From the sequence record MK268344.1: a stretch of DNA of 64,000 nt. The stretch is one strand, 5' to 3'. Shown piece by piece: positions 14,050 through 50,440 of the stretch. How positions within the stretch are numbered: position 1 is the stretch's first letter; the number at the start of each line of letters is the position of its first letter. The notes beneath the pieces were generated by a model, which searched no databases, was not told where the DNA came from, and was given only the letters and a program-made list of their open reading frames with translations. A program made the position numbers and the translations under genes.

Positions 14050-14423
14050 TTTGGATTGCATTGATAGTTGTAGTATCTCTATATTTTCTATATTTTGTAC
14101 TACGCAGTTGTGCAGTACTACAAGGTCTTTATTTCAAAACTGGCACTAAATCAGTTGTAGGTTTAATTGGTGACTATCCAAAAACCTGTATTGGTGTCGT
14201 AATCTTCTTTGTACTAATCAACATCTATGATTACAAGAAACACGTAGTCAGTATGTATGATTGTTCAGTACAGAAGACTATTCACAAAGCAGCAAATAGT
14301 GAATACTCATGGTATAATGGAGAGTGCAACTTCCAAGATAAGAATGGTGTATTCATTAACATGAAGCGTGTACGTGGTCTACCCGAAGGTACTGCTGACC
14401 ACGCAGATGATGATTTACAATAA
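14046..14423 (+). CDS. Membrane protein
   Basis: Two hydrophobic helices, ATGA coupling. Confidence 0.7.
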   Translation: MIWIALIVVVSLYFLYFVLRSCAVLQGLYFKTGTKSVVGLIGDYPKTCIGVVIFFVLINIYDYKKHVVSMYDCSVQKTIHKAANSEYSWYNGECNFQDKNGVFINMKRVRGLPEGTADHADDDLQ

Positions 14424-14432
14424 GGTAAAAAT

Positions 14433-14927
14433 ATGTTTGAATGGGATCAAGAGAAGTACTTTGATCCTACCGAGGACGGTTTAACTCACATCAACACATA
14501 TAGTAAAGGAAGAACCGTATTGGGGAGGATGCTATCAAATTTTGCATACTCCCCTTTTGTGTATGAACCATACGGGAAATTTGATTCCGTTGAGGGCTTC
14601 TGGTACTGGTACTTAACTGGACAGAAGCATGAAGACTTGAGAACAGTAAGTGGTTCATATGCTAAAGTACTTGGTAGGAAATATGAAAGTGATAGAGTAG
14701 AACATTCTCTCACTGAAGAAACAATTGAAGTCATGCAAGGTGCAATAATTAGTAAGATTGCACAGAATAAAGAACTACAGAAAATGTTAATTAGTAGTAC
14801 TTTACCTCTATGTCATTATTATTTCATGTATGGACGTGTCATAAATCCCTTTGATGGTCATGATTGGTTCTCCGAGACATTGGAGGATATTCGGACGGTA
14901 TTGAAACTTGGGACAAATGGTGTTTAA
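14433..14927 (+). CDS. NADAR-family protein (T4 gp30.3-like)
   Basis: LSNFAYSPF...FDSVEGFW resembles T4 30.3 LSNFAQWPF...FGGLEGF as I recall it. Confidence 0.65.
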   Translation: MFEWDQEKYFDPTEDGLTHINTYSKGRTVLGRMLSNFAYSPFVYEPYGKFDSVEGFWYWYLTGQKHEDLRTVSGSYAKVLGRKYESDRVEHSLTEETIEVMQGAIISKIAQNKELQKMLISSTLPLCHYYFMYGRVINPFDGHDWFSETLEDIRTVLKLGTNGV

Positions 14928-14938
14928 TGTGATATAAT
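14907..14938 (+). promoter_or_regulatory. CTTGGGACAAA-class promoter (copy 1)
   Basis: CTTGGGACAAA-N10-TGTGATATAAT. Confidence 0.8.
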
Positions 14939-14943
14939 ATGTG

Positions 14944-15294
14944 TAGATATAACAATTGTGGCTGCTTTATGCAGACGTACTGAAACCGAAACCCTTGAAA
15001 ACGTAAAGGGACGATGAGCATGACCACACATGCGAAGTGCAGATGAAACCCGCTCGGCGGCAATGCGGCACTATAAAAGGACACGTAAGGCACGTTAAGT
15101 CCTCTTGATAGACATATGAGGTCACTCACCAAAATGCTAAGGGAGACGTTTATACGTCGCATATAGAGCTTGATCGAATAGGCTTTGTATGATGTGGGCT
15201 AAGACCCCGACCGTTGCATATGACTGTGATAGAGAGAAACAGAGCAACCCGCTTTCGTTCTTTGACCAGTTTTAGTACGCTATAGTTGTATCTA
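14944..15294 (+). ncRNA. Candidate 351-nt structured ncRNA
   Basis: Begins at the predicted TSS; ends pair (10 bp); second 11-bp long-range helix; many internal hairpins; no credible ORF. Confidence 0.7.
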
Positions 15295-15542
15295 AAATTC
15301 AGAGAAATTCACAATTCGATAATTCCGAGGCTACCAGCGTCAGAATCAATAATCAGTACTTTAATTAGTACTTTTTTATTGTCTTCATTCCCCAATGGGG
15401 GGATGAAATTGCCTCTACAAACCTCGTCAGGAATAAAAGTACAATATGAATTGAGTTACGATAATACGAACGTAGTGAGTATTAAGAGTAACGAAAATTC
15501 TTAGACAATCGTAGATTGGCTAATTAGACAATAGGAACAATA

Positions 15543-16508
15543 ATGAATAAATTAAACAGATCACAAGGTTGTTTAATGGGACTAGCTGTAGGTGATGCAG
15601 TAGGAACTACCTTAGAATTTAAACAAAGAGATTCAGAGAATATCACTGATATGGTAGGTGGTGGCCCATTCCAATTAGAAGTAGGTCAATGGACTGATGA
15701 TACCAGTATGGCATTATGTTTAGGCTATGCATTGCTAGAAGATCATAAAGTAGAAACTTCTGATTGGTCTAGATTGCAATTAGTTAATTACGTTGATTGG
15801 TACAAAAATGGTTATTGTAGTTCTAATGGATACTGCTTTGATATTGGCGGTACTACTCGTAATGCATTACTAAATTTCATCCGTAATGGTACACTTGTTA
15901 ACAACGATCATTTCCTTGATTCTGGCAATGGTAGTTTAATGCGTTTAGCTCCAATCCCAATCTATTATAATACTGGTGCTGATGTTGATAAGTTCACCTA
16001 CTTGTGCTATGCAGCCGATATGAGCAGTTCAACAACACATGCAAGTACTTTATGTCGTCAGTCATGTGTTGCGTTTTCTATACTACTTAATCGTGCTTTA
16101 AATGGCCCGATTGAATTAGAAAATGTTGAACATGATGTATTACAATCAAAGCGTTCATTACTTTCTTTCCCAGAAAAAGTTTGGGAAGGTCTTGTGAGTG
16201 AACCTTTAGTACTAGAAATCATGAATGGTTCTTATAAGAATAAGTCGCGTGATGAAATTAGTTCTAGTGGGTATGTTATTGATAGCTTAGAAGCCGCTCT
16301 ATGGTGCTTCTGGAACACCGAAAACTTCCGTGACGCAATCCTATTAGCTGCTAACTTAGGTGACGATGCAGACACCGTAGCGGCAATTACAGGGCAGATT
16401 GCAGGTGCTTTCTATGGTCTTGATGGTATACCAGATGAATGGGTACAGAAGATTACCAAGAAAGATGAAATTTTACAATTAGCAGAGGACTTGACAGATG
16501 GGAATTAA
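15543..16508 (+). CDS. ADP-ribosylglycohydrolase (DraG/ARH family)
   Basis: GLAVGDAVG, WTDDTSM, GNGSLMRLAP, GDDADTVAAITG. Confidence 0.93.
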   Translation: MNKLNRSQGCLMGLAVGDAVGTTLEFKQRDSENITDMVGGGPFQLEVGQWTDDTSMALCLGYALLEDHKVETSDWSRLQLVNYVDWYKNGYCSSNGYCFDIGGTTRNALLNFIRNGTLVNNDHFLDSGNGSLMRLAPIPIYYNTGADVDKFTYLCYAADMSSSTTHASTLCRQSCVAFSILLNRALNGPIELENVEHDVLQSKRSLLSFPEKVWEGLVSEPLVLEIMNGSYKNKSRDEISSSGYVIDSLEAALWCFWNTENFRDAILLAANLGDDADTVAAITGQIAGAFYGLDGIPDEWVQKITKKDEILQLAEDLTDGN

Positions 16509-40506: not shown

Positions 40507-40821
40507 ATGGAATATTTAAACGAAGACAATTTTAAAGACCTTGATAAATTCATCAAGGATTGCACAGATACCTCAGCAGCAATTGGTAATCTAGATGAAG
40601 TAACTGCATCGATTGATGGTATGTTTATGATCCCAATTCGCCCTAGTACTGTTTATGTTGGGGAATTACATACTAATCCTGAAACTACTCTTGAGGATTA
40701 TGAAGAGTATTTGTCTCAGGGTGTAGAGTTAACGGAAGAAGAATATGCACATTACCAAGTACTTTTAAATGAATGTGAAAATAATTTAAAAGAAATTAAA
40801 AAAACTTGGGACAAACAGTAA
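40507..40821 (+). CDS. Hypothetical acidic protein
   Basis: GGAG RBS. Confidence 0.7.
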   Translation: MEYLNEDNFKDLDKFIKDCTDTSAAIGNLDEVTASIDGMFMIPIRPSTVYVGELHTNPETTLEDYEEYLSQGVELTEEEYAHYQVLLNECENNLKEIKKTWDKQ

Positions 40822-40836
40822 AAAATGTGATATAAT
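40805..40836 (+). promoter_or_regulatory. CTTGGGACAAA-class promoter (copy 7)
   Basis: Exact motif before the ncRNA/tRNA-Ser unit. Confidence 0.8.
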
Positions 40837-40868
40837 ATAATTATCGAAAGATAAAAAACGCTGGCAAG

Positions 40869-41011
40869 TGGATTCATACAGCAAACATTATTCAAATATA
40901 TGATGTATGTTATACCTTCGGGTATATAACGCTGGTAACGTGCGGAAAATTACGTTAACCTTATAGGTGAAAGATGCAGAGGCGGCCTATATTGTATTCA
41001 TAATGAATCCA
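40869..41011 (+). ncRNA. CAGCAA-motif RNA, long form (143 nt)
   Basis: TGGATTCAT/ATGAATCCA 9-bp closing stem, ACAGCAA, internal hairpins including a UUCG tetraloop. Confidence 0.65.
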
Positions 41012-41021
41012 GTTTTAGGTA

Positions 41022-41113
41022 GGTAGGTTGGTCGAGTTGGTTTATGGCTCTAGTCTTGAAAACTAGCGACGGTTAATAGCCGTCCGTGGGTTCGAATCCC
41101 ACACCTACCTCCA
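41022..41113 (+). tRNA. tRNA-Ser(UGA), type II, U73
   Basis: CTAGT-CTTGAAA-ACTAG, long variable arm, CCA. Confidence 0.92.
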
Positions 41114-50256: not shown

Positions 50257-50294
50257 ATTATTATCAGGACAGTAAGATATTCTGGTAAAATTTC

Positions 50295-50372
50295 GTTGAG
50301 TAGCTTAAGAGAGAGCAGCAGGTAATAACGATAAGATCACCTGTCAGCGTGGATTTAAACACCACCTCAACA
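50295..50372 (+). pseudogene. Degenerate tRNA-like element with 15-nt anticodon loop
   Basis: GTTGAG/CTCAAC acceptor, D-like arm, GCAGGT/ACCTGT stem, decayed T-arm, no CCA. Confidence 0.5.
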
Positions 50373-50380
50373 ATTCAATT

Positions 50381-50435
50381 TAGAATCCAACAGCAATTTT
50401 ATTCAATCGCTTATATGAAAACAAAATGGATTCTA
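50381..50435 (+). ncRNA. CAGCAA-motif RNA, short form
   Basis: TAGAATCCA/TGGATTCTA, ACAGCAA, TTCA...GCTTA...TGAA. Confidence 0.6.
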
Positions 50436-50440
50436 GCTTT

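Follow-up and report, generated by a model that had tools for sequence, protein, structure and literature searches.

What is encoded in the 615-nucleotide (nt) gap at 14928-15542 of the 64,000-nt stretch of sequence record MK268344.1 analyzed here (the window), which lies between the genes for a 164-amino acid (aa) hypothetical protein and an ADP-ribosylglycohydrolase? A preliminary description of the locus, made from the letters alone, had placed in this gap a 351-nt structured RNA (14944-15294) with its own promoter and had pointed to bacterial RNase P RNA as a lead. Our analysis revealed a non-coding RNA gene of Salmonella phage 7t3/Munch, which spans window positions ~14944 to ~15377. As judged by sequence comparison, the RNA family is conserved throughout the RaK2/121Q/GAP32/BF-like jumbo phages and is without match to curated RNA families. 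A stable structured RNA with its own promoter, as had been proposed, is strongly supported by covariation in 42 homologues, by a promoter of the type found at transfer RNA (tRNA) genes and by a covarying terminator, and the sequence features quoted in the preliminary description were all found at their positions.

The RNA gene, its promoter and its copies

Over the 1.2 kb tested, the window matches four Salmonella phages (7t3, Munch, SE_PL and PHA46) at 100% identity; for Klebsiella phage fENko-Kae01 (Kae01) the value is 98.4%. These are jumbo phages (~350 kb) of the RaK2/121Q-like group; window position 14400 corresponds to Munch 262400. The gap is without annotation in Munch, SE_PL and Kae01 and elsewhere contains only small hypothetical open reading frames (ORFs). 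As had been noted, the RNA region is richer in G and C than its flanks (0.42-0.475 versus ~0.35), and the minimum free energy of the 351-nt segment is -106.6 kcal/mol (z = -3.86).

Homologues were collected by BLAST and then by a pattern scan with two invariant blocks combined with an nhmmer profile filter. BLAST found the same gap without annotation in 70 phage records and, apart from chance-level short matches, nothing outside the RaK2/121Q-like group. The members belong to Asteriusvirus (121Q, PBECO4), Mimasvirus (GAP32, CBB, XbC2), Alcyoneusvirus (RaK2, K64-1) and Eneladusvirus (BF, fHe-Yen9-04, pEa phages), joined by Xanthomonas phage XaC1. The pattern scan with the profile also returned IMG/VR members, ~30 metagenome contigs and six contigs of bacterial assemblies, including Buttiauxella and Enterobacteriaceae metagenome-assembled genomes and one Silvania isolate. 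The large contigs filed as bacterial are probably co-assembled or persisting jumbo phages; on the 184,944-bp contig of the Silvania hatchlandensis isolate assembly, the RNA is almost the sole nucleotide match to known phages in 8 kb. A scan of IMG/VR with the 5' motif GAAAAYGTA-N6-9-GATGAG gave 117 loci and no true member, the motif being too unspecific. We define the family by the GAAAAYGUA loop and the blocks UGAG, ACCCG, UAAGGGA, GACCGUUGCA, GCAACCCGCUU and CGUCA. The window copy matches the family profile with an nhmmer expectation value (E) of 2.7e-149 and has all of the proposed family traits, namely the promoter, the invariant blocks, the helices Pc to Pn and a pseudoknot formed by the loop of Pj. 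In every homologue the promoter lies immediately upstream, and many of the visible substitutions are compensatory.

The promoter and the copies of its motif in the window are as follows.

14909-14938, + strand: promoter of the sigma-70 type with an extended -10 (TGGGACA, 14 nt, TGATATAAT), recognized by motif recurrence and present in every orthologue and paralogue
14909, 18616, 20944, 27546, 38790, 40448, 40807, 45102, 50227 and 57375, + strand: copies of TGGGACA-N14-TGnTATAAT, 30 nt each, from the window motif scan

At the RNA gene, TGATATAAT occupies 14930-14938 with the -10 at 14933-14938, and GGGACA stands 17 nt upstream. The window holds 10 copies of TGGGACA-N14-TGNTATAAT, none of them on the minus strand, when 0.24 are expected, and none of 100 shuffles reached this number. 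Three of the 10 copies precede mature tRNAs, at distances of 9 nt (tRNA-Ser), 9 nt (tRNA-Arg) and 47 nt (tRNA-Thr) (the -10 ends 9 nt ahead of tRNA-Ser 18654 and tRNA-Arg 27584), and four further copies stand 21-44 nt ahead of ORFs. The motif represents a general promoter class of the phage, probably an early one, for tRNA genes, mRNAs and the structured RNA. Its position and its recurrence, including ahead of tRNA genes, make an RNA start at ~14944-46 plausible, and the start shortly after the -10 that had been put forward is thus credible. Two ORF-free stretches of ~185 nt, at 40837-41021 and 50257-50440, lie between a promoter copy and tRNA-Ser(tga) or tRNA-Leu(taa), respectively; they may be further small RNAs or long tRNA leaders, and neither has an Rfam match at gathering score.

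The RNA gene is not single in these genomes. The pattern scan gave 2-4 loci on each jumbo-phage contig and BLAST up to five places per record, while the window holds only one copy. In Munch, a search with paralogue queries and nhmmer (E from 1e-106 to 1e-147) located four copies.

40,512-41,051, + strand: Munch copy 1
182,023-182,530, + strand: Munch copy 2, with convergent minus-strand genes downstream
~262,944-263,430, + strand: Munch copy 3, which is the window RNA
316,377-316,828, + strand: Munch copy 4

All four have the same promoter type and lie in 560-690-nt unannotated gaps between unrelated neighbours; their length, counted from the predicted start up to the first CGUCAR, is 384-473 nt, and their pairwise identity is 58-74%. 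Full-length orthologues of each paralogue type are found in 57-59 records, which shows that the duplications are older than the split of these genera. By these sequence comparisons, there are at least four diverged paralogues per genome. The convergent genes behind the 182-kb copy rule out a simple leader role for at least that copy. In RaK2 (190448-192897), one RNA copy lies directly 3' of the putative RNA polymerase sigma factor gene RaK2_00244, and a second RaK2 copy has a 3' half and a 3' module (described below) identical to those of the first.

Fold, 5'-3' clamp and 3' end

For covariation analysis, 42 non-redundant members sharing <80% of their 12-mers were aligned with MAFFT on sequence alone, so that the alignments are without bias towards any structure. 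When RNAalifold was run globally on the full-length alignment, the resulting fold was poor and in part spurious, and a helix-by-helix covariation scan and domain-wise alignments were used instead. The structure was found to be conserved and covarying in related phages, which is the outcome of the homologue collection that the preliminary description had advised. For the predicted transcript, covariation shows a fold of two domains and at least 13 helices, with a three-way junction and a pseudoknot of 7 bp.

14944-14986, + strand: 5' leader, in which the 5' strands of H1 (14944-53) and H2 (14976-86) clamp onto the arm 15263-15301
14962-65/14971-74, + strand: small hairpin Pa, in the 5' leader
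14987-15160, + strand: 5' domain, helices Pc to Pi
14992-96/15006-10, + strand: Pc, with a nearly invariant 9-nt loop GAAAAYGUA; 0/200 shuffles reach the observed covariation
15018-22/15029-33, + strand: Pd; 0/200 shuffles reach the observed covariation
15036-40/15068-72, + strand: Pe, 99.5% paired; 0/200 shuffles reach the observed covariation
15050-53/15057-60, + strand: Pf, 100% paired and almost invariant; site of a ~45-nt insertion in other members
15078-82/15099-15103, + strand: Pg, 95.5% paired, with double changes at 5/5 pairs; 0/200 shuffles
15117-20/15125-28, + strand: Ph, partly supported; variable-length arm with poor alignment
15145-48/15155-58, + strand: Pi (variable arm), partly supported, with poor alignment
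15015-18 (UGAG), 15048-52 (ACCCG), 15074-77 (UAAA), 15107-11 (GAUAG) and 15138-44 (UAAGGGA), + strand: invariant unpaired blocks of the 5' domain, by conservation count
15161-15343, + strand: 3' domain, helices Pj to Pn and the pseudoknot, from an alignment of 204 columns
15161-71/15180-90, + strand: Pj, 94% paired; RNAalifold counts give 15-21 double changes at most pairs
15173-79/15314-20, + strand: pseudoknot of 7 bp, 294/294 cells paired, double changes at 7/7 pairs; 0/300 shuffles
15195-98/15206-09, + strand: Pk, 83% paired
15225-29/15309-13, + strand: Pl, 99.5% paired, with no shuffle at the observed covariation; closes the three-way junction with Pm and Pn
15232-36/15252-56, + strand: Pm (GAGAG/CUUUC, loop AAACAGAGCAACCCG), 99.5% paired, 0/300 shuffles, supported by RNAalifold counts
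15258-62/15302-06, + strand: Pn, 91% paired; carries the arm 15263-15301 that pairs with the 5' leader
15209-18, + strand: invariant GACCGUUGCA, containing GUUGC 15213-17
15327-41 and 15338-42, + strand: 3' tail, with a weak hairpin and the invariant CGUCA, respectively

The pseudoknot is seen in 11 distinct complementary haplotypes, and slid registers of the same strands are just 24-43% paired; the 3' strand of Pl continues directly into that of the pseudoknot. Of the short hairpins named in the preliminary description, GCATG/CATGC, AGGAC/GTCCT and GACGT/ACGTC are present and covary, and CTGC/GCAG is present with one matching change, noted on visual inspection of one paralogue. With all helices taken together there are 203 G-U cells and 32 A-C cells, a bias that identifies the + strand as the folded one and speaks against both a DNA cruciform and a minus-strand RNA. 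Conservation reaches at least 95% at 102 positions, and 77 of these lie outside the supported helices, among them the GAAAAYGUA loop, UGAG, ACCCG, UAAGGGA, GACCGUUGCA and GCAACCCGCUU. A possible second pseudoknot is suggested by sequence complementarity between GUUGC 15213-17 and GCAAC 15244-48, a pairing beyond the reach of covariation because both strands are invariant. We rejected the reading of GCUAAG/UAUG as an 11-nt tetraloop receptor, given the strand polarity and the lack of covariation.

Pairing in the pseudoknot is Watson-Crick in 293/294 cells with one G-U, while all helices together have ~8% G-U, and its 7-mer differs among the four paralogues of one genome (AUCGAAU, AUUGUAU, UUCAUGU and ACUGUAU). 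This pattern would fit an intramolecular or an intermolecular, paralogue-specific contact, two possibilities between which covariation cannot separate. In many members, a sub-motif AUAG-helix strand-AAAAUUYRAG occurs twice, closing the variable arm after UAAGGGAG and the Pn arm (for example in the 121Q copy and at 15280-15305 of the window), which suggests an internal duplication or a recurring structural module.

Both long-range helices of the preliminary description were recovered. H1 (14944-53/15285-94) is paired at 10/10 positions in the window, in its close relatives and in the Mimasvirus and Eneladusvirus orthologues, with the compensatory variants TAGATGTAAC/GTTACGTCTA and AAGATACAAC/GTTGTATCTT in relatives, and H2 (14976-86/15269-79), paired at 11/11 positions, is confined to the closest relatives of the window. 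The 3' strands of H1 and H2 lie within the arm 15263-15301, which is inserted in the Pn loop; other paralogue types have a plain hairpin there, and the 5'-3' clamp is therefore a trait of this orthologue group, not of the whole family.

The 3' end that had been set at 15294 proved too short, for it leaves Pn, Pl and the pseudoknot without their 3' strands. Covarying pairs reach 15320 and invariant sequence reaches 15343, the core ending at 15338-43 on CGUCAR, a motif that also ends the second of the following downstream elements.

15355-15377, + strand: intrinsic terminator (AGUACU, 6-nt loop, AGUACU, six U), whose stem covaries with 3-4 pair types per pair and at least 91% compatible cells
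15384-15430, + strand: 3' module, a hairpin UUCAUUCCCC/GGGGGGAUGAA (15384-93/15397-15407) followed by CCUC..CAAAYCUCGUCAR, kept in all paralogue types and genera

A simple terminator scan missed 15355-77 because the stem has fewer than three G-C pairs. The terminator is found in two of the four paralogue types. The 3' module, nearly invariant and with a G/C-rich hairpin, follows the terminator where one exists and is unique in the window (0 expected); it could be the 3' part of the RNA, a processing or protein-binding site, or a DNA-level element. Since it is present also where the next genes are convergent, it is not simply the promoter of a downstream gene.

Identity and function of the RNA

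The cmscan comparison with Rfam that had been advised covered the window copy, three paralogues and 17 orthologous loci; at E <= 10 it returned no RNase P, tmRNA (transfer-messenger RNA), intron, 6S, T-box or large non-coding RNA family. The lead in the preliminary description, a divergent phage-encoded RNase P RNA that would process the many pre-tRNAs of the phage, has in its favour a similar length, a tRNA-rich genome, a promoter common with tRNAs and short words identical to E. coli M1 RNA (ATGACTGT, AGAGCAA(C/A)CCGC and TGACCAG). At the same threshold, however, neither RF00010 nor RF00011 matched any of 22 copies (including the window copy, orthologous loci and paralogues), when the positive control, E. 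coli rnpB, scored 318.6 bits (E 4e-104) with the same tool, and aligning the RNA with M1 RNA over its length gave scores in the range of shuffles (z = -0.17 global, 1.3 local). Both motifs of the long-range P4 helix, GAGGAAAGUCC (CR-I) and ACAGAAxCCGGCUUA (CR-V), are absent, in agreement with the earlier failure to find the 5' strand of P4; absent likewise are GAGGAAAGTCC and three other conserved RNase P blocks in the form that they take in M1 RNA. The look-alike of the P4 3' strand, CCCGCUUUC, pairs with GAGAG 15232-36, 15 nt upstream (99.5% of cells, nine extra pair types, 0/300 shuffles); the look-alike segment belongs to the local hairpin Pm, of which it makes up the loop and 3' strand. 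We also considered and rejected a P4-like helix, ACGA[U]GAGC/GCUUUCGU, as its 5' strand varies without compensation in the alignment. Type A RNase P RNA (RF00010) resembles the window RNA in its two-domain pseudoknotted architecture, its association with tRNA genes and a few identical 7-12-nt words; the window RNA differs from it in lacking the conserved P4 strands and regions and a model match, and a genome with four or more diverged copies, as here, has no known parallel among RNase P RNAs. We give the RNase P lead hardly any weight.

A protein-coding region has still less to recommend it, and we assign it next to no probability. Depositors of 7t3 (MK773491), PHA46 (PP191103), Hallingskeid (PQ464590) and fHe-Yen9-04 (LT960551, g347/g348) annotated 2-5 small hypothetical proteins across RNA genes, and the window has ORFs of 107 aa (minus strand) and 72 aa (plus strand). 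Neither ORF has a Pfam match, and the longest ORFs of the 42 homologues (median 72 aa) differ in strand, frame and position, so that the earlier judgment of no credible ORF stands and the minus-strand ORF that had been raised as another explanation of the sequence is not conserved. The substitutions are those of compensatory base pairing and not codon-like, and the 3' module has an ATG followed by a stop after two codons in 121Q-like phages. The small hypothetical proteins annotated over RNA genes are probably spurious.

Several other identities were tested. Phage-encoded tmRNAs exist, and the window RNA resembles tmRNA in size (~350-400 nt), in having several pseudoknots and in the pairing of its 5' and 3' parts; it differs in lacking a tRNA-like acceptor/T-arm and a tag reading frame and in being multi-copy, and ARAGORN found 12 tRNAs and no tmRNA in the window, as Rfam found no tmRNA. 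Group I and group II introns were rejected because there is no Rfam match and the element is intergenic, with its own promoter and different neighbours at each copy. GOLLD, ROOL, OLE, raiA and HEARO were rejected for want of a match at gathering score or at E <= 10. A hammerhead-like core (GAUGAG-hairpin-GAA) was rejected because it lacks the U that precedes GA in the hammerhead core and shows variation at the two residues following G12.

What would such an RNA do? We find it somewhat probable that this is a folded RNA with multiple paralogues, probably early, that acts in trans as a protein-binding scaffold or a ribozyme. Host RNA polymerase would read the gene from the sigma-70-like promoter class of the phage tRNA genes, probably early, and transcription would end at the intrinsic terminator, at 15377. 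The transcript would then fold into its two domains, with the 5' end clamped onto the 3'-domain arm in this orthologue group, and the ~77 near-invariant nucleotides outside helices would probably form a binding or catalytic core. With moderate confidence, we infer action in trans through the three-dimensional fold, as a protein- or RNA-binding scaffold or a ribozyme, because one copy has no downstream gene to regulate, because the conserved nucleotides are mostly unpaired junction and loop residues and not an antisense stretch, and because RNAs of such size and conservation have generally turned out to be scaffolds or ribozymes. The RNA does not appear to be an antisense RNA, an mRNA or an RNase P RNA.

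Other roles for the locus were weighed against action in trans. A cis-acting leader, that is, a riboswitch- or T-box-like attenuator or a processive antitermination RNA controlling read-through of 15355-77 into the 3' module and the downstream genes, would account for the order seen in three of the four Munch copies, where a large structured RNA and an intrinsic terminator precede + strand genes, and for a 3' module conserved beyond the terminator. It is nevertheless unlikely, as the 182-kb copy faces convergent genes, downstream genes differ among paralogues and genera, two paralogue types have no terminator, the covariation scan showed no alternative terminator/antiterminator pairing, and no T-box or riboswitch family matches. 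Quite unlikely is the view of the loci as replication origins or DNA-level landmarks, in which the RNA would be a primer precursor like ColE1 RNA II or the R-loops of T4 oriF/oriG, with the hybrid at the G-run/C-run module. At least four copies are dispersed over the 350-kb genome, every one of which combines promoter and RNA with an invariant G6/C4 hairpin and AT-rich sequence after it, and the module is conserved by sequence, not by covariation. The primer transcripts of ColE1 (RNA II) and T4 (oriF/oriG) are likewise promoter-driven structured transcripts of several hundred nt followed by a G-rich/C-rich element, and T4 too has several dispersed loci per genome. The tertiary structure of the window RNA, however, is far more elaborate and conserved than theirs, its invariant unpaired nucleotides and tertiary pairing go far beyond the needs of a primer, two paralogue types have an efficient-looking terminator between RNA and module, the locus shows no skew inflection, and nothing links the loci to replication genes.

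Multiple copies and a repeated short motif CGTCAR might also bring to mind part of a degenerate mobile element, either an IS200/605-type end with an omega-RNA-like guide RNA or an intron derivative spread to several sites; a subterminal hairpin with CGTCAA/G ~22 nt downstream of it has a loose likeness to IS200/605 right ends. Yet no transposase, TnpB/IscB, reverse transcriptase or homing endonuclease adjoins any copy, the copies all have promoters of their own, and the HEARO, IS605-orfB and intron models gave no match. Across genera, the positions of the copies are orthologous, and the copies share 58-74% identity, which speaks for ancient duplications and not recent spread. A mobile element is, in our estimate, very improbable.

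A number of observations count against a folded RNA acting in trans. Family sequence was found in reads only from four wastewater "RNA" runs, as fragments of relatives that are probably DNA. The shuffle tests overstate independence, the sequences being phylogenetically related, although the main helices are secure in view of how many different complementary haplotypes exist and of the nearly 100% pairing in alignments made on sequence alone. The two paralogue types without a terminator run on into the conserved 3' module, so that the 3' end given here is a predicted one. The module itself is conserved in sequence with little covariation, which could reflect a DNA-level or protein-binding role. 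Finally, the functional part of the proposal derives from size, complexity and conservation.

We put forward a more specific version of the trans-acting reading as a tentative possibility: the RNA may represent a new class of large RNA with a complex fold (~400 nt, at least 13 helices, one or two pseudoknots, ~77 near-invariant unpaired nucleotides and 4-5 ancient diverged paralogues), in which the pseudoknot would be an intermolecular contact sorting each paralogue into its own homo-oligomer, or the core would be a new catalytic or ligand-binding site for takeover of the host RNA or translation machinery. Large bacterial or phage RNAs of such structural complexity and nucleotide conservation are rare, and nearly all of those with a solved function are ribozymes, cores of ribonucleoprotein machines or, lately, self-assembling RNA cages.

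Related systems and neighbouring genes

GOLLD and ROOL are large ornate non-coding RNAs that are often found in phages and prophages near tRNA genes, and in kind they are closest to the window RNA, which, having no match to their models, is a member of neither. Both were shown in 2025 to form RNA-only homo-oligomeric cages (PMC12286853). The window RNA resembles them as a large structured phage-borne non-coding RNA with pseudoknots and many conserved unpaired nucleotides in a tRNA-rich region. In contrast to GOLLD and ROOL, it measures ~400 nt (versus ~580-800), it matches no GOLLD, ROOL, OLE, raiA or HEARO model, its family occurs in jumbo phages of Gram-negative Enterobacterales and Xanthomonas, and each genome has four or more diverged paralogues with individual promoters. 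In the distantly related jumbo phage PA5oct, RNA-seq defined four non-coding RNAs of 236-619 nt (ncRNA001-004), two of which are highly expressed throughout infection (PMC7318152). They are similar in being transcripts without annotation; nhmmer --max found no homology between ncRNA001-004 and the family, and they contain none of its invariant blocks.

Neither Rfam 15 nor the literature searched contains a description of this RNA family, which is apparently an undescribed, multi-copy family of RaK2-like jumbo phages. A 2023 screen of viral structured RNAs reported 8,495 anonymous candidates from IMG/VR (PMC10690425), a list that might contain pieces of it. In ~70 deposited genomes, the 560-690-nt gaps have been left without annotation or filled with spurious small ORFs. 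At least four ancient paralogues conserved across genera are unusual for such RNAs and suggest a division of labour or a dosage or assembly requirement. As the family is present in cultured lytic jumbo phages of E. coli, Salmonella, Klebsiella, Erwinia and Serratia, it is experimentally tractable.

The genes on either side of the window copy lie outside the RNA.

14433-14927, + strand: upstream neighbour, 164-aa protein with a weak NADAR match (PF08719, E 0.0054, below the family cut-off)
15543-16508, + strand: downstream neighbour, ADP-ribosylglycohydrolase

The RNA gene is thus flanked by two putative ADP-ribose-removing enzymes. The ADP-ribosylglycohydrolase neighbour is also present in Kae01, Hallingskeid, EJP2, BF, pEa47 and XbC2, and the other paralogues have unrelated neighbours.

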